A stretch of DNA of 63,461 nucleotides, the filler included, from Platydemus manokwari (taxonomy: Eukaryota): assembly GCA_037951405.1 (NCBI GenBank). It is 5 parts of 5 records of this genome, joined end to end, with 100 filler letters (N's around TTAATTAATTAA, not from the genome) between each part and the next. Parts side by side here need not be neighbours in the genome. Positions count along the whole stretch, not along the records: positions 1 to 15,525 come from JBBMOY011278095.1; 4 more parts are not named here. The stretch is one strand, 5' to 3'. The notes under the pieces are model-generated. The model worked only from the letters and a program-made list of their open reading frames with translations, was not told the DNA's origin and ran no database searches. Below are positions 1 through 15,525 of the stretch, piece by piece; positions within the stretch are counted from its first letter, which is position 1, and each line of letters opens with the position of its first letter. Both the position numbers and the translations under genes were made by a program.

Positions 1-853
1 GGTGTTTAATAGAAAGTTAAAATTCCAAACAAAATTTATACTTCATAAATTGACCCCTATATCTAATTTTACTGCGTTGATCGCAATCAGAGAATATATT
101 TAGTAAGACATACCTGTAATTATATAATTAAAAATTAAGTAATAAATTAAAAGAATTAATTAATCTCACAGATTTCCAAAATAATTATTATATAATATTA
201 GCGGTTTCGAATTTCTTAGAGGCTCTTAAGTTACAATCAGAAAACAATTACCTTCAATTTTTATCTTTAAAAATAATTTTAAATTGCCACCATTATAGAA
301 AGACATTAGTACAGATCTTAAGAGTAATCAACTGTAATAAAGTTTGAAAGGTAATAAATTCGTATTTAAATCTGTTCTTTCCAAAGCATAATTATATAAA
401 CAGTGGACAATAATACGTCATTATTTAACTCAAAATTTTCATTGATTCTGGAAAAACTTTATCAGATAAAAATATTTGTTATTTTAACAGTCTTATCACT
501 AATTTCCAAAATAATGTAAATATGTTGAGAAAATTACATTTATTCATTCTCACAAGTATGTTTAAGATATAATATCCAAAATAAATTTTTTATTTACCCA
601 TATTTTTACTCTTACTAATTATTCAATAAATTGGTATTAATATTAAGAGATTTAATTAAAAATTTTAATAATAAAACAAATTGTTCGTTAATTACTGTAA
701 ATTTTTAATAAACATTATTTACTCATTTGTTTTAAATAGTTGTAAAAATTTATTATTTCAAATTTTATTGCAAGTGATTTACAATTACATTATTTTTTAA
801 TTTTAAAGTAGTTTAATTAAATATTTAAACATTAAAATTTTATTTCTAAATAG

Positions 854-3800
854 ATGTTTTCCAGCGATCCGTTATATACAGATTTAGATGCTTATAATAG
901 TGGTAATCGATTATTTAATCTAAACGATGGACAGAATATTTGGTCTTCTGATAAGATGTATCCCATTGATAACAATTTTTTCAATAAAAATAGAAATGCA
1001 TTTAACAACAATATACAAATAACAGATAGATTCAATAGAACTAATCGAAAACCACCAGGAAACAGAAGCGAAACAAATTTAATAGTTAATTACCTTCCAG
1101 ATGGCTTTTACGAAAAGGAATTATTTGAGTTATTTAGTAAAGCTGGACCTATTATCCATTATCATGTTGTCAGGAATAGAGTAACCTTATGTTTAATATG
1201 TAATATATAATAGATAAAATTAGGAAAACAGAAGTGAATGCTACGGTTTTGTTGATTTTGAGAAGTCTAGTGATGCAGAGAAAGCTATTGATATGTTCCA
1301 TCAATATCAAATACAAAATAAAAAGCTTAAAGTCCAAAATGCTGCAGAAGGCTTACTTATCAAAGAAGGTGATGAAGTATATCGAAGTTATGATTAATAG
1401 ATGTTATTTTTTGCAGAAGAAAAATATCGTGCAACCAAGGGCTTTAATAATATAGGATATAATGTTGAAATCAAAAACGCGCCTACTAGATGGACTGTAA
1501 ATGACGTAAAGGTGAATTTTAATTTATTATATATTACCCAATTTAATTAAGTCTATAAAATATTACATAATTTATTTTAAAACTTTAAGTAGTAAATTTA
1601 TCCCCATTTATCGATTTGATAAGTTACGCAATCAATTTCATGAAACTACTGTTCATATTAATAATGATAATTTTTACAGAATATTTTTGGCAAATATGGT
1701 GAGATATTGAAAGTTTATGAACATGCGAACGATGAACTATGTACAAGCGAAAATTCCACAGATATCCGCACAAAAACATTTAACGTTATTTTCCGTTATC
1801 AAACAATTGCACAGAAAGTTGTTAAAAAGAAAAACAACCAATTAGCGGAACCGATGTGGCCATTGGAATTGGAGTTATCTATTGTCGGTCAGGAATTCAT
1901 TGAAGTTCCTTTGGAAAACTCTCGATCGTCTCGGCCTCGCTCAACGAAATTACGTTTCGATCAAATGTCCGACTGTTCGTGGGATAATAAAATTGATAAT
2001 AAGTTTGACAACACCAACTACGGACAGAAAAATTATGAAAATTCCATTTTCAGTTGGGGTGACAACGTCGAACTGACTCGACCGGGATTACCTTTAACTT
2101 CCAATGGGCGACCGATATTGAAACATAAAGATAATCTAATGCATTTGAATGGTGTTTATGATGTCAATCCAACAATCGATCCCACTGACAAATGGAATGG
2201 TAATGGCTTATCAAATGAACCAAATGGCGTTTATTTCGATCATAAAATTCGTGGTTCATGTAATGATATCAAAGCAATTTGGGAACCAAAAGAATCATTG
2301 TTAACCGATCCATTACCTCAAGATATATTCGTGACGACTCCATTGTTGCCATCACGGTTTCGAAATGATGATAAAGTCAAACACAAGGCCAATATTTGGT
2401 TTAAAATGGAAAACATGCAACCGACAGGTTCATTCAAGCTACGCGGAATGGCATTTTGGTGTTATAAGGTGAGTGTTGTAGTAAATAATGATTTTGATAA
2501 ACAAATAAACAATAATCAGATCAACATTATTAATATTCATTAATTATGCATGAAATTGATCATGTGATCACATAAATGTGGGTGTGTGTGTGTTTGTGTG
2601 GTGATGATCGCAATGATCTATTTGATCTCATCCATTATTGACAGTGCCTTGAATAACAATAGCAATAATAATAGATTTCATTATTGGTTCTATTCGATAC
2701 ACATATATACATATTATCATCATTGATATCACCAATCATATTCAGGCGAAAATCGATGGCGTACAACTTGTTGTTTCTTCCAGTGGTGGCAATGCAGGCT
2801 TGGCAGCAGCATATGCTTGTCGAATGTTAAAGTTGAAATGTACAGTTGTCGTTCCCAATACCACTCCTGTTGCCATTATTGGGGAATTGCTGAAGGAAAA
2901 TGCTGAAGTCATACAAGAAGGTTCGTGTTGGAAAGAAGCTCATGCTAAAGCTGAATCAATCGTTGCTAATTATCCTCGAATCAGTCGACTTGTTCATCCG
3001 TTTGATAGTGCACTGTTATGGAGTGGTTATGAGTCGATTGTTGATGAAATTGTTACCGATATGAAAGGTGCACGATTGGATATGATTGTTTGTGCTGTCG
3101 GAGGTGGTGGTTTGTTGAATGGAATAGCCCAGGGAATAACGAAAAACAAATTAAATAAAACCACTGCTATATTGGCAATGGAAACCGAAGGAGCAGCATG
3201 TTTCAATCAGTCAATGTCAGTTAATAGAATTGTTCCAATAGTTCCAAACAGTATTGCCACTTCTCTAGGAGCTTCCAGTATCAGTCAACGAACTTGGGAT
3301 ATTTTTTGCAACAAGGAATTCCATTTATTTTCGAAAGTCTGTTCTGATGCTGAAGCAGTTGAAGCCTGCTGTCAATTTTTAAGTAAGTTTTTCATTTTTA
3401 GAGAGCTTATTTTAGGGGTTGGTTGGGGTAAACAGGGCATTCTTATATAAATATATTCAATTAGAAAATGGAGCATTTATAATTCAAATGATTTATATAT
3501 AAATTGTAATTAAAAAATTGGTGATTCTCTACAAATATTTTTGATAAAATAACTCATTTGATTCATTCATGTCATTCAGTCAACAATTGATATTATAAGT
3601 AAATAAACACCAATCGATCCGTATTGTATTTCTGTTATCAACTAATGATCCATTGAAGTCCATGAAAATCTCTATTATTGTGACAAATTACATCACCTTA
3701 GATAAATACTGTCATTAATTCGACACCTAGAAACCCATAGGGTGACTGTTAACGATATATAATCCATCCTATCTATATATTACTCAATAAATTATTCAAT

Positions 3801-4615
3801 TGATTCTACAAAACAATAGGTAAACATTCATTAAAATTCGACACCTAGAAACCCATTTGGTGCCTGGTAACAATATAATCCATTTAATATCTATTTATTA
3901 CACAATCAATTCATGTTCAAACACATGCTTTCAATCCCTATGATGATAATATGTTCTTTATGTAATCTTAATTGGTAATTAATTGTTGTTTACAGATGAA
4001 CAAAACTGCTTAGTTGAACCTGCTTGTGGAGCATCTCTGTCATCGCTTTATAATGGGACATTAGATCAAATGGCTGAATGTCGAAATTGCGATCTGAATG
4101 TTGTTATTATTGTTTGTGGTGGTCGATGTATCGATATCCAAAGTCTCTTGGAAATGAGACAAGTCTATTCTGCTATTCTACCAAGCTCCACAACCTATGA
4201 TGTCCCGTACGATAATTTGTCGAATTTCGACGTTAATGATCGATTTCTTTCCTTGAATTTGAACAAGGATAATTTCTCTGCTCCAACCGAATCTGATATG
4301 TTTTACGGTTCCTCGAGATATGATATCATATCGAATAACTATAACCAAATGTTTCCTTCAATCACCAAGAATAATGATTCCAATAACTGCACAAATTTAC
4401 TCAAATCCAATATTCTGACAGAAAATAAATTCTGTTACCATCGCAACATGAATGAAAGCAATTCTCATATAAATTATAATAGTAGTAATAATAATAATTA
4501 TCAATCATCAATGACCACCGAACAAAATTACATGTCCACCAATGATTTGATGTCTTCACCTGTTGGTAGTCAACATTCGGATAAAGAGAATCGCATGTTA
4601 CCCAATGACAATTGA
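854..4615 (+). CDS. RRM-RRM-serine dehydratase (SDS/SDSL-like) fusion protein, about 870 aa, 6 exons
   Basis: Exons 854-1180, 1224-1368, 1417-1511, 1680-2468, 2746-3382, 3996-4615; all introns GT-AG and phase-consistent (2613 nt). RRM1: ETNLIVNYLP (RNP2, ELAV/Sxl-like) and SECYGFVDF (RNP1). RRM2-like: NVEIKNAPTRWTVNDVKNIFGKYGEILKV. Fold-type II PLP motifs: KMENMQPTGSFKLRG (Schiff-base Lys codon 2436-2438), SSSGGNAG, VGGGGL, EPACGA, IVCGG. Asn/Ser-rich tail. AATAAA at 4742-4747. Confidence 0.88.
3717..3920. repeat. Diverged tandem duplication (period about 118 bp) in intron 5 of the RRM-SDS gene
   Basis: AATTCGACACCTAGAAACCCAT occurs at about 3717 and 3835, and the following sequence also aligns. 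Confidence 0.75.
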
Positions 4616-5492
4616 TTTATAACGGTCAAAGACTCAAACGAAATAACTGGTTTAGATTAGTTTTTTTTACTTTATTTTATTAATTTGATTAAATTTGATG
4701 AATAACCACTCATTTTTTAATGCGGATGTGTATTTGAGAATAATAAATCTGTATGATATTATTATGTGGTGATTATTACTGTTCTTTATTATTATTATTA
4801 TTCGGATGATGATTTGATGATTCGATGAAACATTTCGTGCTTTGTGTAAAAATTTATGTCGTAGTGTTTAATTCCTGCATTTTATAACAAATTACAACCA
4901 CAATAACAACAACAACAACAACAACCAGTAATAATAATGATGATGATAATAATACCACAGTTATTGCGCTAGGATTGTTTTATTGATATCTCTATATATT
5001 TGATATATATATTGATATATATATATATTATTATTATTTTGCGCGCTCTACCATTAGTCAGCGCTTAATTTCTGTGTGCATAGTCTATTAGATTTTTGCT
5101 CATGAAATAGATTATCTGACAATTTAAGATATTTATTTTTTGTAATTCAGTTCCTGCGGTTGAAATTTCAATTTTTTTGCATATTTTCATGGTTGACTTG
5201 TCGAGGTATCTGTATATTTATAGTGTAGTTATTTTACTAAAAATACAATTTTGCTGTTAGTTGGACTTCTTTTTTTCTATTGTACAAATTCAATATTTGG
5301 TATCAGATGAATTTCATTGGATATTCATTCGATGATTGTCGACAAATGAAATATGGGTTGTTTTAATAGTAATTTTCAAACATACATATAAATATAACAT
5401 TTCGATGCTGATATTTTTAATGTTATCAATCTATGGTGAATATTTATTAAATATTTTTCCCAAATGTGAATTACCATAGAAGATTGTTTACA

Positions 5493-8400
5493 ATGGCCTT
5501 AGTGTTGAATTTGAATTATGTGGATAATTTGGATAACAGATGCGATCGAATAATGAAGATTAACTTTAGAGGTAATCCATTTGGACCTTAATGACTTGGA
5601 CATTTGCTACCATTGATTTTGTCAGATTTCGAAAAAATTACAAAAGTGGTTCGTGGAAAGGATAGCATATATTATGGGGAACAATTTCAATGGCCTATGG
5701 GTAGGAAATTGGATGCTATAGATACTTTAGAAATGCGATTATATCAATATAGTAAATATTTAAATAACAAGTAAGATGTATTTGTTTTTTTATTGTTTAG
5801 TCTCTGCACTCAATAATTCGATGATTTATTTATAATAAATTGAAAATGATTGAGAGAGAATTTATTAATATACGCGCATATAAACGAATATATAATGTAT
5901 ATTTATAAACGAAATAAATGTACTCAATTTTACTAAAATAGAAAATTTATTCAGTTTAAAAATCATCAATTAAGTAAATTATTTGATAATTACTATGAGA
6001 AAAGCTTTGAATGGAAATCATCACTGACGAAAATCATCTGTCAACAAGTCATATTTTATCATCCGCCCCAATCTACAGTTCGATTGATGATATTTCATCA
6101 GTTTGGGGAAAAATAATTGAATAACTATTTGGGTTGAAATCAAAATCAACGAAAAATCATTATATGAATTGTTCTTCATAATTATTCTAACAACAGGATG
6201 TTTAATAAAATTACTCTTGTCATTTTATCAGTTAATTTCTTCATTTCGATAGGAAATTGTGTCGATTAATATAAAGTATAATTTTATTCTTTGAGTTGTA
6301 TGTCACTTAAAAGGTCAACCACGTCGTTACATAACATGCAAATTATTGCCCCTTGATTTTCTTTTCGATTGCGTAATTCTTGGAAAAGTGATTTGCGTTA
6401 TAAAATCAATTAATTCCAATAAGAAGTTCGGATTAATCGAAGATTAGATGTTAATCTTAGATCTACATATTAATAAATGGTTAATATTATGTTCTGATCA
6501 TGTACTAAAATCAACTCAATGAAATGTGTGTGAACAATACAGAATTATTTTTTTTAAACAAAATCCATTATATTATAAATTTGTTTGTTCTGAATTCTGA
6601 TAACAAATCTAAAATTATATTCAATAGTTTATATGTGGTCAAAACTTCACAATATTTGATGATATGCATCAACACCATCATTTGTCTTTTCATTTACATA
6701 TCGGAAACCATCTTCATCTTCAACAATTTATTTTACAATTTATCTTTGTTGGTTAGACTATACTTTCAATACAACAACTGGATTGTAAATTTTGAGGTGT
6801 TTAATAAATCAGTTGTAAAAAATCTGATTGTAACTTCTCTAATAATTACATTTACTTATTAATTGTCAGTAAAGTTTTACAGTATTATCAATATATGGAA
6901 TTTATCTTTGAGTGATCAAATATATAATAGATTTATTAATGGATAACAAAACACTGGTGAAATTGTACAATCAAGACTCATACTAAAACCATGATTCAAA
7001 CTTGTGATTCATTCATAGCATTTTCTTTGTCTGCCAAGCTATTAATACGAGCAATTTATGTAGACGATTACGCAATCAATCGTCATTATCAAGCTGAGAG
7101 AAAACCATTTTTTGTAATGAATTGCACGAGAACAGGTATTAACTCAAAGCTTGTCAACTTGAGAGCTTGAAAATAAAAAATAAATTCATAAAAAATATCT
7201 CCAATTATTTAAAATTAACCATACATTAGTGCTCACTAAATTCGAAATAATTTGTCTAATGGTATTCACCCATTGATTTTTATTAATGTCTGGCAGTTTA
7301 CTAGTTCGATTCTTCAGAATTATTCAACCGGAAAGTAAGTAAATAACTCATAAAAACAAACTGTTAATTTTGCTTTTGGCCCATAATAGATGTTGACTTT
7401 AATTTTCTAATAACTGGATGTAATGCCAGTAAATGACACTAATCTGGTTTTATGTTGAGTAGACAAATACATTCGTTTCTGTACATAAATAAATTGTAAT
7501 TGATCTCAAAAATATAATACAAATAAACTTCCAATAAACATGATCTAGATGACGTAAGTACCTTCCCAATGCATTACAATGCCTTGAAAGTCCATTATAA
7601 TTTCAAAATCACAGTATGACACAACCAGTTATTGAAATAATTATTATGAACTATTAATGAAAACATTATTTGACAACAAATATTGTAAATTATTTCCAAT
7701 CTACTCCGTTCAATACAAATCCGTTATTCATTTTATAAAGTCTCACACAAAATTGGGTGGAGCTGTTTGTTAGAATTATTAGATAGGCTAGTAAAAAAAT
7801 TGTGACTTCAACGATTTTTTGTGAATATTTTTCCTTTCTCATATTTCATTTTTATATTATAAATTTCCATTCACTGAGTTCGTTTTATGCATTAAATGCT
7901 AATTGGTTTTCTTTTGTTTTTGTAATAAACATTTTCCGTATTATATAATATAAGTTTCATAAAATACAAATAGTTATGTGTCGATATAAATTTTGATAAT
8001 CCATGTCTTTATAACACATTCTTTCCAAATATTTAATTCATTAATTTAGATGGATATTCCAATTGATTTTTAATATTGGTCATTAATATGAATTGCAAAA
8101 ATATTTTTATTATTGAAATATTTAAAATAATAATAAATGTTTATTAATCAAATTAGAGTCTCAGTGACTTTTAGATTACAGAAGTGATCTACATTGGTAA
8201 CATGAGTCTTTTGTCGCCAATTAATCCAACAATCATACGTTTTACCATTAAGAAATTTTGATTGGAAATGTATTGAATAATATGATTTTATTTCTTTTTT
8301 GTAATTGATAACCAATATTTTCAGGAAATAAAAAATATGAACACCATTTAAAAATTAAATCCATACAACAAAAATGTTTGAATTTCTTAAATCACGAAAT

Positions 8401-11400
8401 AATTTGACTTTTATTATATTAAAATTAGTTTAACTATTATGTTAATATTTTACTGACACTAGAAGGCTTGAGTAACACGTGCTTAGACGATATTTCCGGA
8501 GAAGTTAACTGAATTATCTAGAAGTTTGGAATTTATATTGATTGGTTGTTGAGGCGGTAATTTGTATAAGTGTGGAAGAAAGTGAATTATTAAATATGAC
8601 CAATTATATTGTATTTTGATATCCTCATTTGTTAGAGTAGCCTATATATTAATAATAATTTATGATATGCGTATAAACATTGAAGTTAACTTCACAAAAA
8701 TAAAATAATAAAAACGATTTTGCTAAAATACATGACCAACTATGCAATACATGACTTACAAAATATACATTCTGCGGATATTAGAAAATGTAACAAATGA
8801 CGTCGAGAATAGATTTATTTTAAACAATTGAAAATTTAAATTAACTTATTAATTGATCCAACGAAGTGTATGTAACAAGAAAATGTTAGTCAATGTCAAA
8901 ATATTTTTCAAAATAATGACAACTTCGTCGTAGTCTTCTTAAAAATCAAATTCTTCTTGACCAACGATTTTGTTAATCTCTTTTGATAATCCCAAATTTT
9001 GCCTTCGAAATTAACTTTTTGTGAAGTAAGATAGACTAATTTCTGCTCGCTTTGTATACTATTTCATATATGAGCGTTGTGTCACGGGGATATATTTTGT
9101 TGATATTTAATTTCTTCATAAAATACAAGTATTTTATTCTTTGTGGTTTGCATTTATTTTGTCTGTTACTCAATTCGGTTGTCTGACTTAAATTAATTGT
9201 AGTCTGGCTTTCACCTTTCTCTTTTATTTATTATTAATTACCTGATTATTGTTATACAATATTACTACTATTCTGTTTATTTATTTACCTAAAATTGATT
9301 TATTGATATTATTATTTTTGTATAATTTTTAAATTTATTTTATTTATTGCGCCATTTATTTATTTAAATGATCTAAAATATTTTTTGTCTTAATTTGGTT
9401 TATTTTCTATTTTTACATATTATCGAGATATCAGACTTGGGTCAGTGAAGATTATTATTATTTTACTATCACTAATATTAACGCACACTCTTTATATTAA
9501 TCAAAATAAACACTGTATGATAAATTTATAAAAGAAAATTAAATGGTCCAATGTTCGCATCGAATAATAGTGGGTTTTGACTTACAATTTTGTTTTGATT
9601 TATTGAAAAGAACATGATACAGGAGTTGCGAATTTCTATATTTGTAAATTAATTTAATAAGGTAACTAATTGCAAACTAAGATTAAGAAAATATGTTGAT
9701 TAAACCATTAATATTTTAAAAATTAAATTAAATGTTAAAAAATCTCCAATAAACTAGAAAGCAAAGAAAGATTTAGATGATTTTTATGAGGTTATAAAAT
9801 AGACATAAGAGGTACATAAAATTAATTGCGCATAGAATATTTTAGAGACGTAATAAATCGAATAAAAAGAATAATTAAAATTATTTTATAATAATTGAAG
9901 ATAATTTTAATTAGATTAAATTTAGAAATTTAAAAAAAATGATTTTAAGGAAAACTAAATGAATACGTGATTCAAATCTACCACAAATCATAGATACAAT
10001 TCATGTGACTGTTTGATTTCCAACCAATTGTTACCTGATTAGCTACAAAACTGTTGATTCAATGAAAAAAATCTAATAGTAGTAACTTTCTGAATATATT
10101 TTAGATAAACTTGGCGACTGTTATGGGCATAAACATGAGGAATATATCAGTTCTTTTAATAATTTACAGATCATGTCAAAGATTGATATTCGCTCACATA
10201 TTTATATCATTTCAACTTGGGTACTTTTATCCGATGAGTAATTTAGAATTTTCAAAATTATATTCATTTTGATGCATTGATGGTACATTGTACCATTAAT
10301 CATATTATCTATTTGATTTGATTTGTCCTATTTTAAATAATTAATCGTAATTTGTACCACCATTTGATTGGATTCATATAAATGGTTTTTAGCATTTTTT
10401 TTTACAAAATTTGTTACCACTAATCTTGTTTTATTTTATTTTGTTTCAAATAAGTTATTATATATGTTACAAAAAATATTATCGCTTTCAAAAAATATCA
10501 AATTTTTATCCAAAAATCAATTATTAGATAAAATAGTCAAATAAAAAATTCAGATGAAAAAATCAGGCTATTAATAAAAAATAATATGAAGTAGTCAAAT
10601 ATCAAATAGTTTGTTCATTGGATTGTATTGATTTGAATTTTTTTCACTGGAGCTTTAACTGAATTTTTTAGGTCTTTCTGTATTGTTAGGCATCGAGATC
10701 CACAATCAATGATCTCCAGGTTCTATGTCCTTTTCAGCTCCTCCCGTCCTTTTAGAGTTTCTCCAATGTTGCCACGTTTTATGATCCGCTTTCTCTTTGT
10801 CGCTTTAATTTTCTGTTAGCCCATATTTATTGGATGTTGTGACGTATCCTGCCGATTCTGTTTTGGCTTTTTTTTTCAATTACTCATATGCGCTAATAGT
10901 TATGGACATATTTTCGTCCTAATCCGTTTCACTATCGAAGTATATCACTAATCTTCCCATTGTTAATTCTTCTGATTCTCTTGGGTTTTTACTTTTTGGC
11001 TCTCCCAACACTTATGTTTAAAAACTAAAGAGGTTGCCATGTAAATATAAAAAATTTGCAGATAATAGATATTGAGAAAGCCTATTACTATTTTGATAAA
11101 GACTTAACAGTATTTAATAAATAAATGGCGATTTTTTTTCTATTGACTCTACTGATTAATAACTTATCAAAACTTGATGTACAAATTATCGAAATACTTA
11201 AGTTTTAGTTGGTTATTGAATGTTTGGGTGATCTCTTAATGAGAAAGAGAGCATTCATACTGAATTTATAAAGAAAATTTTTTCCATTATCCACGCGGCA
11301 CCAAGGTAAATGTTTATTTTGAAGAATAAAGTGAAGTTTTGGGTCACAGAATCAACAAAGATTGTATAAAGCATTGAAGTTAAAGAAGAAAATGCAAAAC

Positions 11401-13289
11401 ATAATTGAAATAGTTTGTGGACTAACAAATTACAATTGTAGAATAAAAGATCTGAAAGTAAATACTTTATGATTCTAATTAAAATTCTCAGCCAGTCAAA
11501 TAAATAAGCTCGTAGTCGACATCGGAGCTATGAAAGATGTGATCACTATATTTTTGGAAAGAGGAATGACTTACTACCGTGAATGGAATTTTTTCTATTG
11601 TACTAAATCCCACAATATTGAAATAGCTTATGCACTCAAAACAAATTTATACATCGAATTAGAATGCAAAAAGGATTCTATCTAGGAATATTAAAGAAAA
11701 GTAGTAAGAGAAAATACGAATTTAGCAGCTTAAAAGATAGTAGTCATGGTCGAAGAGAGAAGGAAAAATAAAACTTTCAAGGAATCGAAAATATTAAAAC
11801 GACATTCATTAAAGACTGAAAAATAATATCGAAATTCAGGGACTCGTAAATGGAAAGACAAGTTTGTTAGTTTTTGAAATAGCTTTTTAAAATGAATTAA
11901 TTATAAAAATTACAAATTTATTTACTTCATAGGTTAAAAATTTATAATGGCTTTTGTTAAGTTTAATATTTAATAATCGAGCACATCGAAGTTTTAACGT
12001 TATTATCACGAGTATCAAAATGTATAAAGTACTAGATTTATGATTAATTATCATTAATATATTATTAATTTTTAATTATTTAAATAATAATAAATACATT
12101 CTATGTATTTTTTATTTCATCTTGTTTTGATCGGACATAAGTGATATAATTTATCATTGTGTGTACGTTAGAATACAAGAAAGTAAACTTATCAAAGGCG
12201 ACGATGAACTTTTATAAATACAGATAACAGATATTGAAAGAGACCAATAAAAATTGGCATGTATGGTATATAACAAAATCGATTAAAAATAGCTTTGAAA
12301 CAACCTTCAAAATGTTGATACATACAAACACAATAAACACTTACCATTAGCCAATCAAAGGTCTTAAAATTATCAATCTCTTTGAATTTCGATTTTCAAT
12401 CGATACATACGAAGTCTAGACAAAGAATAGCGGAGTATACCAATAACACGAGAATAGGATGGCACATGTCAACGAGTAAGTCTTCAGACGGTTATAACAA
12501 ATAAAAATCGAATTTGTAAGACAGTAAGTTAACACACACACCATGAGTCTATAAAATGAGTCAACTCATAGAGGCTGTCAATTTTTATGGGCATTATTTG
12601 TAGTAATTTTTATCGCACCCATTGTGATTTTGGCATTTTTTTCTTTGAATAACTTCGATGTTTATGATTTTTGAGTGTAGTGTAACGACAAGTTTATTTG
12701 GCTTGTGAATTGTTATTTAGAAATTATTTAGAATTATATTTTTCTGTTATTCGGTCTATTATTAAACGTAACAGGTAGAACAAAACACTCGACTGGATTT
12801 CTTATCGAATCTGTTCATGTTGAATTATAGCTGGATTTATAAGTTTGCCCTTAACATGATGATTCGTGGAAATAAACAGAAAAAATAGTTATTTTTATAA
12901 TATTTTCCACACAAATTTAAAACGGATTTATTAATAGAAATGTTAAAATAAAACTTTTTGAAAATAAATAAGTTAATTTAAGAACTCGGTGTGTCTATTA
13001 GTTAGTTGCCAAAAAGAAAATTAATGGGACATCTTATTACAAATTATAATAGACGCATATACATTTATAAATTAAAGGCAGTTCAACCTCTTTCCCTTGA
13101 TAATAATGTATTAATATAATAGTTGGAGATTAACCTAATTTTATTTTATTGACATTATCGATACAAAATTAATTTCTGATTATTTTTAGATTAATAGGAT
13201 CAATGACAATTAGTCTTCAGAAATTATTAGAAGATAATAAGATTTCTTATAAAGAAAATCTCATCGATAATAATCATTCCATAATACGT
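5493..13289 (+). CDS. otof: Otoferlin-like ferlin, 5' part (C2A domain); the rest lies beyond the segment end
   Basis: Exons 5493-5571, 5626-5770, 13190-13289 splice in frame to MALVLNLNYVDNLDNRCDRIMKINFRDFEKITKVVRGKDSIYYGEQFQWPMGRKLDAIDTLEMRLYQYSKYLNNKLIGSMTISLQKLLEDNKISYKENLIDNNHSIIR. This aligns by eye with the otoferlin N-terminus (MALLIHL..DRIAKVTFRG..FRWP..NYSK..NKLIG..LQK..LIDDNN). Confidence 0.85.
10660..11030 (-). mobile_element. Degenerate 3' fragment of a non-LTR (RTE-like) retrotransposon
   Basis: Frameshifted minus-strand translation ends ..RTWRSLIVDLDA*, resembling the DRxxWRxxV C-terminus of RTE ORFs; locally higher GC. Confidence 0.35.
11170..11850 (+). mobile_element. Highly degenerate Ty3/gypsy pol fragment
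   Basis: KVKFLGHRI at about 11328-11354 (RT primer-grip motif) within stop- and frameshift-ridden purine-rich sequence. Confidence 0.35.
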
Positions 13290-13863
13290 GTAAGTATTTG
13301 CTTTTATTGAATTAAAAGGATTATTAAACATAAATCGAAAGCATTTTTAACAGAAAAGAGTTTTAATTGAATTCGTTAAATTAAATTAAAATTCATTCTA
13401 ATTAGGAATTTTTTTTCACTTCGGAGCATATGTTTAAATGAATGAAAATCGAAAAAAAATTGGTAAAAATTATTGGTTGTCGATGGGTTTATAATTTTTT
13501 TGACTTTAAATCGTATGGAAAACGTATGGATAAAATTTATTATCAATATTTTGTTTGCATTTAGAAATTTTAAAATTTATAACGAATAGTATTTCAATGG
13601 ATTAGAAAAGTATATTAATTATGTTTTTCACGCATTTTTCTATAATTAAACATTCTAATGACACCTTATTATAATAAATAATAAATCAATGGAAATAAAA
13701 GTATTCATATATAAAGTCAGGGAATAGTTGTTATTAGTTATGCGATTTTAATGTTTGGAGTTATTACTAGGCTCGGCTTTTTATTTACATTTTATCTAAG
13801 GATCTATAGATCTAAGTCCGCTTCTAATCATGAATAAATTGGCAATCTATCTATCTATCTATA

Positions 13864-14490
13864 TACACCACAACTCCAAAACTGGAACAGGTTGAATGTT
13901 CCAGTTTTAGAACGATGTTAGTTAGGCTACGTTTAATTGGTGTTTCAATTTTCATTTCCTTCTGGATAATATTGGCTTGTGCAATTAACAATGGGCATGA
14001 TATTGTTAGCACCTCTTGTCGCTTTGACACGAACCATTTATACAAGCTCTTATCAAGCTCTTCCAAGTAGTGAAGTTTTATGTTTCACATCCTTTTATAT
14101 TATTTGACAATGATGATGTAGCTTGCAATATCTTATGACTCCTTTTTCTTAGATTGAAAAGAGTAGTTCAGCCAGTCTTGTATTTATCTAATTTGATATT
14201 ATTGTCAGTGCCATTATCTAATTTTTCTAAAGTTTCATATTTAGTTAAAAATTGATTTGCTTTCGTTTTTATTTTGATGCCATTATATGGGTATGCAAAG
14301 TATTAACTTAGATACTAAAATACTCTGTCAAAAAAATCTGTGAAGTAAAAGAAATAAGCACAATAACGAATAAAAAATGGTAGTCAATAATATCCTAAAA
14401 TTGTAGTAAAATATAAGCTACAAGTATGTTAGATTTTTAAGAAGGTTTTCCCGTTTCAGGATGTCCAGTTTGAGAACGTTACTCTTTGTA
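13864..14490 (-). mobile_element. Pogo/Tigger (CENP-B/Jerky-like) transposon remnant, internally deleted
   Basis: Broken N-terminus MASK.KRKQI from 14283 and CENP-B-type HTH EELDKSLYKWFVSKRQEVLTISCPLLIAQA. Degenerate TACA..AAACTGGA terminal repeats at both ends. No DDE domain seen. Confidence 0.65.
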
Positions 14491-15525
14491 TTTATAATAT
14501 CCAATTTTTAGTATTTATTTTTAATTTAAGTGAATTTTATTTATCTTGGAAATTTTATTTTAATGTTAGTAAGAATTTGTTCCCAATAATACACTGAATA
14601 CTTTTGACGTTCATCCAAACTTTGAGAGGAGTATACATATGAAAATAAAATAGAATATAAGCATTAAGTATAAAGGAATTTGAAAAAGTCGATGACAACA
14701 TTCAGAAATTTATTTGTGGGTTCAAAATTTGATTTAGATAAAACCATTTCGCACTCTAATGATATCATTATAACTAGAATCTTAATATTAAAAAATCCAA
14801 GAAAACAAGTAATGCATCTTGAAGTAAAAATCATCTTAAAGGTCGTAGGACACAGTTCTTGGTTATTATAGAAAAGAGAGACTGACCAATGGGTATGTGT
14901 GTAAATAATAGAATACAAAATGTAGAGTCAGACAAAGTTAGTTTCCATACACCTGACAATCATCTTTATTAAGAATGTTTAACAACAATGATATTTTGTT
15001 TGCCAATTATAAATAATTCCGACTACAATATATCGCTCTTGTTACTATAAAATATTCTGACTATCTGGAAGTCTCGGTGATATCTCATTTTAACCGTAAT
15101 CCGTTGCTTGGTTCTTTGGAAGATAAAATTAAAACAATTTAAAATACACATGGGCGCTTATATTGTGTTTGATTTTAATGATGAGTGATCGAGGGATACT
15201 AAAAACTAAGATTTTTATATTCAAAATGACAAATAAAAATCAATAAATTTACACTTAATGAAGATTTAGAAAGACAATTGTGGAAATAATCAAGAATAGG
15301 TTAAAAATTTGAACTGTGACGTTACCTAAAAATATTATTTTTACAAATATAAGATCTTGAATTTTTTTTCAGTTACTTCTGTTTTGAAGTCATTAGTTTG
15401 TTGGGGTTCCTGGAAAATAGCATTAAAACATTTTTGCATGCAATTGATTTGATGTATTAAAGTAGCATTTTTTTATCGTTTTATTGTAAAATATTATCTT
15501 CTTTGTTTCTATAGTTAATTGAAGC

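Follow-up and report, generated by a model that had tools for sequence, protein, structure and literature searches.

Can one flatworm gene encode both an ELAV-type RNA-binding module and a serine dehydratase, and what keeps the two parts together? This question is raised by a locus of Platydemus manokwari (assembly GCA_037951405.1) at positions 854-4615, plus strand, of the 63,461-nucleotide (nt) stretch of DNA that we analysed (hereafter the window; positions 1 to 15,525 come from record JBBMOY011278095.1). The original prediction, made before any database search, described it as an ELAV/Sxl-type RNA-binding protein fused to an intact serine dehydratase (SDS). That observation is confirmed: as far as sequence can tell, the locus holds one genuine fused protein-coding gene. 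Its product of 870 amino acids (aa) consists, in order, of an ELAV/Hu-like RNA recognition motif (RRM1), a degenerate second motif (RRM2), a disordered hinge of ~135 aa, a complete SDS/SDSL-type pyridoxal phosphate (PLP) domain and a low-complexity tail. We consider it fairly probable that this is an ELAV paralogue in which the third motif (RRM3) has been replaced by a dimerising SDS domain, which is probably still an enzyme in Platydemus.

The re-derived gene model has six exons with GT-AG introns and a 2,613-nt reading frame of 870 codons without an internal stop, the same length as originally proposed. Its parts are as follows.

Exon 1, 854-1180, plus strand: start codon, N-terminal region (aa 1-73) and front half of RRM1, with RNP2 (TNLIVNYLP) at 1073-1099.
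Exon 2, 1224-1368, plus strand: rear half of RRM1, with RNP1 (CYGFVDF) at 1239-1259; Pfam RRM_1 positions 36-70, E = 7.6e-8.
Exon 3, 1417-1511, plus strand: spacer between the RRMs and first strand of RRM2 (YNVEIKNAP, 1458-1484); colinear with the orthologue P0008 across both junctions.
Exon 4, 1680-2468, plus strand: rest of RRM2 (1680-1880), hinge (1881 to ~2290) and start of the SDS domain, including the PLP lysine.
Exon 5, 2746-3382, plus strand: central part of the SDS (PALP) domain; SSSGGNAG lies at 2776-2799, VGGGGLL at 3097-3117.
Intron 5, 3383-3995, plus strand: 613 nt with GT...AG boundaries and two copies of a ~71-90 nt repeat.
Exon 6, 3996-4615, plus strand: end of the SDS domain, with VEPACGAS at 4013-4036 and IVCGGR at 4109-4126; TGA stop at 4613-4615.

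Exon 1 covers Pfam RRM_1 positions 1-33 and ends at a GT donor at 1181, and the N-terminus that it encodes matches that of P0008. In Pfam, structure and database comparisons the spliced protein was represented by its exon pieces and by P0008 and P0002, the MetaClust entries that are its closest full-length relatives and that support all five splice junctions and the start codon. The window is AT-rich (~19-37% GC in 500-base windows) and of eukaryotic structure. The three largest exons lie in open reading frames (ORFs) of 290, 265 and 210 codons; the longest frame in 300 shuffles of 15.5 kb each, made at the composition of exon 4, reached 174 codons, which rules out a chance origin of these frames.

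The strongest statement of the original prediction was that the RRM2-like part and the PLP-lysine motif SFKLRG share one uninterrupted exon (1680-2468), and this holds. Exon 4 is a single open frame of 290 codons, 1671-2543 from stop to stop, which includes the rear two thirds of RRM2 (NIFGKYGEI...KTFNVIFRY...WPLELELS), the hinge and the first 60 residues of the SDS domain, among them SFKLRG at 2430-2447 with the Lys442 codon at 2436-2438. The frame opens at 1671, just ahead of the acceptor at 1679/1680, and the helix motif of RRM2, DVK/NIFGKYGEI (the slash marks the junction), spans exons 3 and 4. A relative is represented by a 1,010-nt genomic contig (L003; Logan, run SRR33002330), whose exon 4 is 84% identical in protein and has the same acceptor and the same donor, with similarity lost in the flanking introns. 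The two exons differ by four single-codon in-frame indels. The proportion of nonsynonymous differences (pN) is 0.09-0.11 against a saturated synonymous value (pS) of ~0.95. This holds equally for the RRM2 part, the hinge and the SDS part, so the hinge appears to be translated and constrained in the exon-4 frame. As an observation in its own right, nearly all synonymous sites differ between the relative and Platydemus, and third positions of the relative are far richer in G/C: base composition has shifted strongly between these two species, although they are fairly close.

The same continuity is seen in more distant flatworms. In Hymenolepis diminuta a single ORF of 674 codons runs from RRM2 through the hinge and the whole SDS domain to the stop, so that the fusion there needs no splicing. 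Three intron positions (after aa 109 in RRM1, 189 in RRM2 and 452 in SDS) are exactly common to Taenia solium, and 17 orthologues align colinearly with the Platydemus protein. The case for the fusion is thus comparative, and strong; the only public sequencing run that holds the stretch gave a genome-collinear contig with no joints, which is probably the source DNA and so says nothing of the transcript.

These data bear on the explanation that two neighbouring genes, or a trans-spliced polycistron, were wrongly merged, and that no single protein is made from the continuous frame. Flatworms use spliced-leader trans-splicing as a general feature, in-frame Met codons are present in the hinge, and several database orthologues (P0002, P0003 and P0141) are truncated or mis-predicted. 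Against this, RRM2 itself straddles the exon 3/4 junction at an intron position conserved in Taenia, the exon-4 frame opens exactly at a conserved acceptor and is constrained through the hinge, Hymenolepis keeps the whole stretch from RRM2 to the stop in one frame, and the same order and colinearity recur in at least 25 species, whose annotations come from different pipelines. We therefore hold such a merger to be very improbable. The claim that the fusion does not depend on joining neighbouring genes is borne out by exon 4 of L003, the Hymenolepis ORF, the Taenia introns and the single clade of SDS domains described below.

What kind of domain follows the hinge? Pfam PALP matched exon 5 (E = 5.1e-38) and exon 4 (E = 3.2e-7), and the best PDB matches were human SDSL (2rkb, E = 7e-35) and then rat and human SDS (1pwe, 4h27, 1p5j). 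These matches span SDSL residues 6-47, 53-254 and 258-310 over exons 4, 5 and 6; the first 54 residues of exon 6 match SDSL 258-310 and rat SDS 262-315 and complete the domain. It ends at ~4170 and is followed by an Asn/Ser-rich low-complexity tail of ~150 aa, which is unconserved and disordered in relatives. In the structure of rat SDS, the motifs of this fold provide the Schiff-base lysine, the Asn loop, the phosphate loop and a Cys. The intact cofactor motifs that had been reported (SSGGNAG, GGGGL, EPACGA and IVCGG) are all present, and five motifs (SFKLRG with its lysine, the Asn loop SSGGNAG, the tetraglycine loop, EPACGA and VCGG with its Cys) match 22 stand-alone SDS sequences exactly (alignment A2). 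The domain resembles SDS, SDSL and yeast CHA1 (fold-type II, PF00291) in being colinear with SDSL 6-310 and in the identity of all motifs, and it may form a homodimer, as a prediction given below suggests.

The remaining difference is one of architecture. Stand-alone SDS enzymes are single-domain proteins of ~320-400 aa, whereas the 870-aa Platydemus protein carries RRM1, RRM2 and the hinge (~390 aa) in front of the domain and the ~150-aa tail behind it. The view that SDS and SDSL are normally single-domain agrees with the non-flatworm homologues, which are PALP-only proteins of 363-474 aa, other fusions being rare; a nemertean has a PDZ+PALP combination instead. No second SDS-type locus was found in the 911-Mb assembly by a heuristic search over 1.99 million contigs, a very fragmented set, in which this locus was the only one. 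Given a fully canonical active site and this single SDS locus, deamination of L-serine and L-threonine is most likely retained in Platydemus, which would make the protein bifunctional.

The N-terminal module, in turn, appears to be ELAV/Hu-derived. Pfam RRM_1 was found split across exons 1 and 2 (RRM1), and the closest solved relatives of RRM1 of P0008 are HuR (4ed5), HuC, Sxl and HuD (E = 1e-18 to 5e-17). RRM1 carries an ELAV-type RNP2 (NLIVNYLP) and RNP1 (YGFV); the RNP residues TNLI-NYLP and CYGFVD are invariant in 21 sequences, and this part is nearly invariant across the flatworm phylum. RRM2 gave no Pfam match in the Platydemus exon pieces, in the close orthologue P0008 or in most orthologues, and it aligns to the Pfam-significant RRM2 of Macrostomum. 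In the AlphaFold model of P0008 (residues 60-300), there are two beta-alpha-beta-beta-alpha-beta domains (pLDDT ~87-95, and ~87-94 for RRM2), and Foldseek aligns both of them to the RRM1-2 tandems of HuR, Sxl and HuD. The less derived Macrostomum tandem aligns to both HuR RRMs (E = 4e-39). By alignment, the aromatic residue of RNP2 in the second motif of Platydemus is replaced by Glu and its RNP1 is matched poorly. The original assignment of ELAV/Sxl-type RRMs is sustained for RRM1, for which Pfam and the structural relatives agree, and needs a qualification for RRM2, which is supported by alignment and predicted fold and has no Pfam match. Because RRM2 has lost the canonical RNP residues, it may no longer bind RNA canonically, and to speak of two ELAV RRMs would overstate the RNA-binding module in Platydemus.

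The hinge is predicted to be disordered in P0002 (pLDDT ~30-35) and contains the conserved motifs SNGRPILKHKDNLMHLNG at 2100-2153 and GSCNDIKAIWEP at 2253-2288. The one at 2100-2153 is a short basic motif, SNGRPILKHKDN, recognisable throughout the phylum (RPIIRNK in Spirometra, R(A/P)I(I/M)RNK in Schistosoma). It might serve in localisation or in interactions, and its position resembles that of the shuttling element in the hinge of HuR. No RRM was found after the hinge, either by Pfam on the exon pieces or in the predicted structure of P0002; the C-terminal domain is PALP.

ELAV/Hu proteins (HuR/ELAVL1, HuC, HuD and Drosophila ELAV) and Sxl are the nearest known systems for this half, with an ELAV-type RRM1, a second RRM fold directly after it and a long flexible hinge. 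ELAV/Hu proteins are built as RRM1-RRM2-hinge-RRM3, whereas the Platydemus protein is built as RRM1-RRM2-hinge-SDS, with an RRM2 that lacks the canonical RNP residues. The same genome holds at least two other tandem ELAV-type RRM1-RRM2 loci, G000:C57792:783-1295 (plus strand) and G000:C739648:2755-3267 (minus strand), in long single open frames of 493 and 415 aa. They are presumably canonical ELAV-like genes; the RRM-SDS gene would therefore be an extra paralogue. Macrostomum melav2 (PMC2795745) was considered as a candidate for the RRM-SDS gene and rejected, since it is a protein of 422 aa with three RRMs.

Is the fusion peculiar to Platydemus? Proteins of 715-971 aa with RRM_1+PALP are present in NCBI/UniProt for at least 25 flatworm species. 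A homologue search seeded with the Schistosoma mekongi protein (KAK4474193.1 / A0AAE1ZIC0) returned 26 proteins, nearly all from flatworms, and 24 of them carry RRM_1 and PALP. The fusion is found in trematodes (Schistosoma spp., Heterobilharzia, Trichobilharzia, Fasciolopsis, Paragonimus, Dicrocoelium, Opisthorchis, Calicophoron and Echinostoma), in cestodes (Spirometra, Schistocephalus, Mesocestoides, Taenia, Echinococcus, Hydatigera and Hymenolepis) and in the macrostomid Macrostomum lignano (BOX15_Mlig010810g1); monogeneans are represented by Cichlidogyrus and by the partial Protopolystoma entry P0150, which has RRM_1 only. The database names of the family are automatic, such as 'L-serine ammonia-lyase', or 'Serine dehydratase-like' for the S. 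japonicum entry. A search with a planarian-type hinge (P0008 residues 150-430) matched P0008 and P0002 only and returned no transcript-derived planarian proteins.

A maximum-likelihood tree of SDS domains unites the 19 fused flatworm sequences in a single clade (SH-aLRT 98). Branching within this clade agrees with flatworm taxonomy, and the Platydemus sequence is sister to P0002. This is consistent with a single fusion event early in the history of flatworms, whose products in macrostomids, planarian-like forms, monogeneans, cestodes and trematodes are orthologues. No fusion was seen outside flatworms by a word-seeded, length-limited search and by one exhaustive search with exon 4 only, which is weak evidence that it is restricted to them. 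The novelty of the architecture, as first proposed, stands in part: the combination is widespread, and it is uncharacterised, with automatic names throughout and no paper describing an RRM-SDS or ELAV-SDS protein found in a full-text literature search. It is a lineage-specific domain combination, and the Platydemus gene is one ordinary orthologue of it, with the same domain order, shared intron positions and an SDS domain in the same clade.

Comparison of the orthologues tells more about what the SDS domain may be kept for. The Phe-Lys of the Schiff-base motif (column 2433-2438) is kept in Platydemus, the planarian-like relatives and trematodes, and Cichlidogyrus keeps the Lys with Phe changed to His. 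In all eight cestodes examined it is replaced by V-L, V-V, V-A or V-T, and in Macrostomum by V-C (lysine-less entries P0139, P0140, P0142, P0143, P0144, P0145 and P0148 from cestodes and P0146 from Macrostomum). In cyclophyllidean cestodes the glycine loop has decayed too, and in trematodes both the Asn loop and the residue at the pyridine-N1 site are altered. Platydemus and its planarian-like relatives combine the most canonical SDS motifs with the most degenerate RRM2, in contrast to cestodes and Macrostomum without the PLP lysine and to trematodes with altered Asn-loop and N1 sites. Nevertheless, the lysine-less domain is under purifying selection: between Taenia solium and Hydatigera taeniaeformis, the ratio of nonsynonymous to synonymous rates (omega) is 0.129 for SDS (340 codons), 0.106 for RRM2 plus hinge and 0.014 for RRM1, the most constrained portion of the protein. 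The 'L-serine ammonia-lyase' entries of cestodes and Macrostomum are probably pseudoenzymes. Because these lineages lost the lysine and still keep the domain under purifying selection, the comparison implies that the fusion cannot owe its conservation to catalysis and that the SDS domain has a conserved non-catalytic role. The functions first suggested were a coupling of Ser/Thr catabolism, or of amino-acid/PLP sensing, to mRNA regulation, or a tether of the enzyme to RNP granules; by this comparison a structural or sensing role would be favoured over the tethering of an enzyme.

This pattern also speaks to a simpler view, in which the protein is essentially a housekeeping Ser/Thr dehydratase and its RRM part, an extension at the N-terminus, is inert or binds only proteins and has no RNA function. 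Such a view fits the canonical catalytic motifs, the sole SDS-type locus found, the degenerate RRM2 and the name 'L-serine ammonia-lyase' that databases give to the family. It does not fit the constraint on RRM1, which has the lowest omega in taeniids and RNP2/RNP1 motifs invariant in 21 sequences, nor the retention of both RRMs and SDS domain in cestodes and Macrostomum after the loss of the catalytic lysine. We regard it as improbable.

The opposite possibility is that in all flatworms, Platydemus included, the SDS domain acts as a pseudoenzyme or as a sensor of ligands, which binds Ser, Thr or PLP, or only dimerises, and so gates RNA binding without meaningful catabolic flux. Repeated loss of the lysine under continued purifying selection, the altered Asn loop and pyridine-N1 residue of trematodes, and the precedent of RNA-metabolite cross-talk in the PLP enzyme SHMT1 (PMC10758965) all point this way. 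So does a 2025 study of Echinococcus, in which EmuJ_001093200 ('EmTD') was treated as a plain 'threonine deaminase' with no mention of RRMs: its transcript was nearly absent and its protein undetected in metacestodes. EmuJ_001093200 of E. multilocularis is probably the orthologue of the RRM-SDS gene, an equivalence that we infer. On the other hand, the five motifs of the Platydemus copy are identical to those of active stand-alone enzymes, which would be surprising unless catalysis were under selection, and the assembly search yielded no second SDS gene that could supply the activity. A phylum-wide pseudoenzyme is unlikely, though less so than the housekeeping view.

We thus prefer the reading that the gene is a lineage-specific ELAV/Hu derivative that has kept RRM1, RRM2 and the flexible hinge, and in which a fold-type II PLP domain of the SDS/SDSL type has taken the place of the third RRM. 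RRM1 would bind U/AU-rich RNA as RRM1 of Hu/ELAV proteins does, and the degenerate RRM2 may assist it or mediate protein contacts. The SDS domain is predicted to form the usual SDS homodimer and would thereby pair two RNA-binding modules. In HuR and ELAV it is RRM3 that dimerises (PMC6344896; PMC2275111), and the SDS dimer would take over this job. In addition, the domain may report Ser/Thr or PLP status. For two copies of the orthologous domain (P0002 residues 275-615), the homodimer prediction gave 0.81, the best control being 0.00, with a contact agreement of at least 97% and a partner pLDDT of at least 87, a result in which predictor memory of solved SDS dimers possibly has a share. The mark used was attained by 21 of 30 solved homodimers and by none of 23 solved single chains.

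A more ambitious version is a metabolite-gated switch, in which Ser/Thr/PLP occupancy or the catalytic state alters dimerisation or RRM accessibility of the ELAV-type protein. Feedback of metabolite binding or catalysis on RNA binding is speculative, and its precedent is SHMT1, in which RNA binding and metabolites modulate each other (PMC10758965). Like the Platydemus protein, SHMT1 ties PLP-dependent serine metabolism physically to the binding of mRNA. It differs in that RNA is bound by the catalytic fold itself, without an RRM, whereas the Platydemus protein has a dedicated ELAV-type RRM module covalently fused. We rate the switch as quite unlikely. If it were true, the stability or translation of U-rich mRNA would be tied directly to amino-acid status in flatworms; the lysine-less versions of cestodes and Macrostomum would be pure sensors or scaffolds, and the planarian-type version would still be an enzyme.

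Several points weigh against the preferred reading of a dimerising ELAV-SDS protein that is still an enzyme. With an RRM2 that escapes Pfam and has lost its RNP residues, RRM1 may be the only part that binds RNA. The homodimer result may reflect what the predictor remembers of solved SDS dimers, and the count of one SDS locus comes from a very fragmented assembly and a heuristic search. The presumed Echinococcus orthologue is almost silent in metacestodes. An extra SDS-only or RRM-only isoform may exist, through an internal start, alternative polyadenylation or trans-splicing, beside the transcript of the present gene model. Finally, the orthologues are gene predictions themselves, and some of the models are faulty: P0003 has a duplicated segment, P0002 is without RRM1, and P0141 is truncated or mis-predicted.

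From 4700 to 15525 no other convincing coding exon was found, the longest open frames being of at most 118 codons and within the range of the shuffles, and the gene appears isolated on its contig (to 15525). Intron 5 contains a direct repeat of ~71 nt (to ~90 nt) at 3689-3759 and 3807-3877, whose copies are 75% identical and 118 nt apart, and a 29-nt imperfect inverted repeat at 3439-3504; these are possibly a small repeat or the remnant of a miniature inverted-repeat transposable element. On the minus strand, a 71-codon ORF at 13851-14066 has a weak match to HTH_Tnp_Tc5, the DNA-binding domain of Tc5/pogo transposases (E = 5e-4, under the Pfam cut-off), and is likely a decayed fragment of a pogo/Tigger-type transposon.

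What does the locus mean for flatworm biology? Natural gene fusions are strong hints of functional coupling, and here RRM1-2 of the ELAV/Hu type and an enzyme of Ser/Thr catabolism have been joined and kept throughout a phylum. Planarians, Macrostomum and schistosomes can be studied by RNAi and in situ methods, which offers a genetically tractable case for the idea that RNA, enzymes and metabolites are connected. The repeated loss of the lysine under purifying selection gives a clean example of pseudoenzyme evolution. In metabolic reconstructions of parasitic flatworms, such as Echinococcus, the gene is read as an ordinary 'threonine/serine deaminase', which is probably wrong for cestodes because the PLP lysine is absent. 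More generally, the family suggests that the fold of a metabolic enzyme can stand in for RRM3, the dimerising motif of ELAV proteins.

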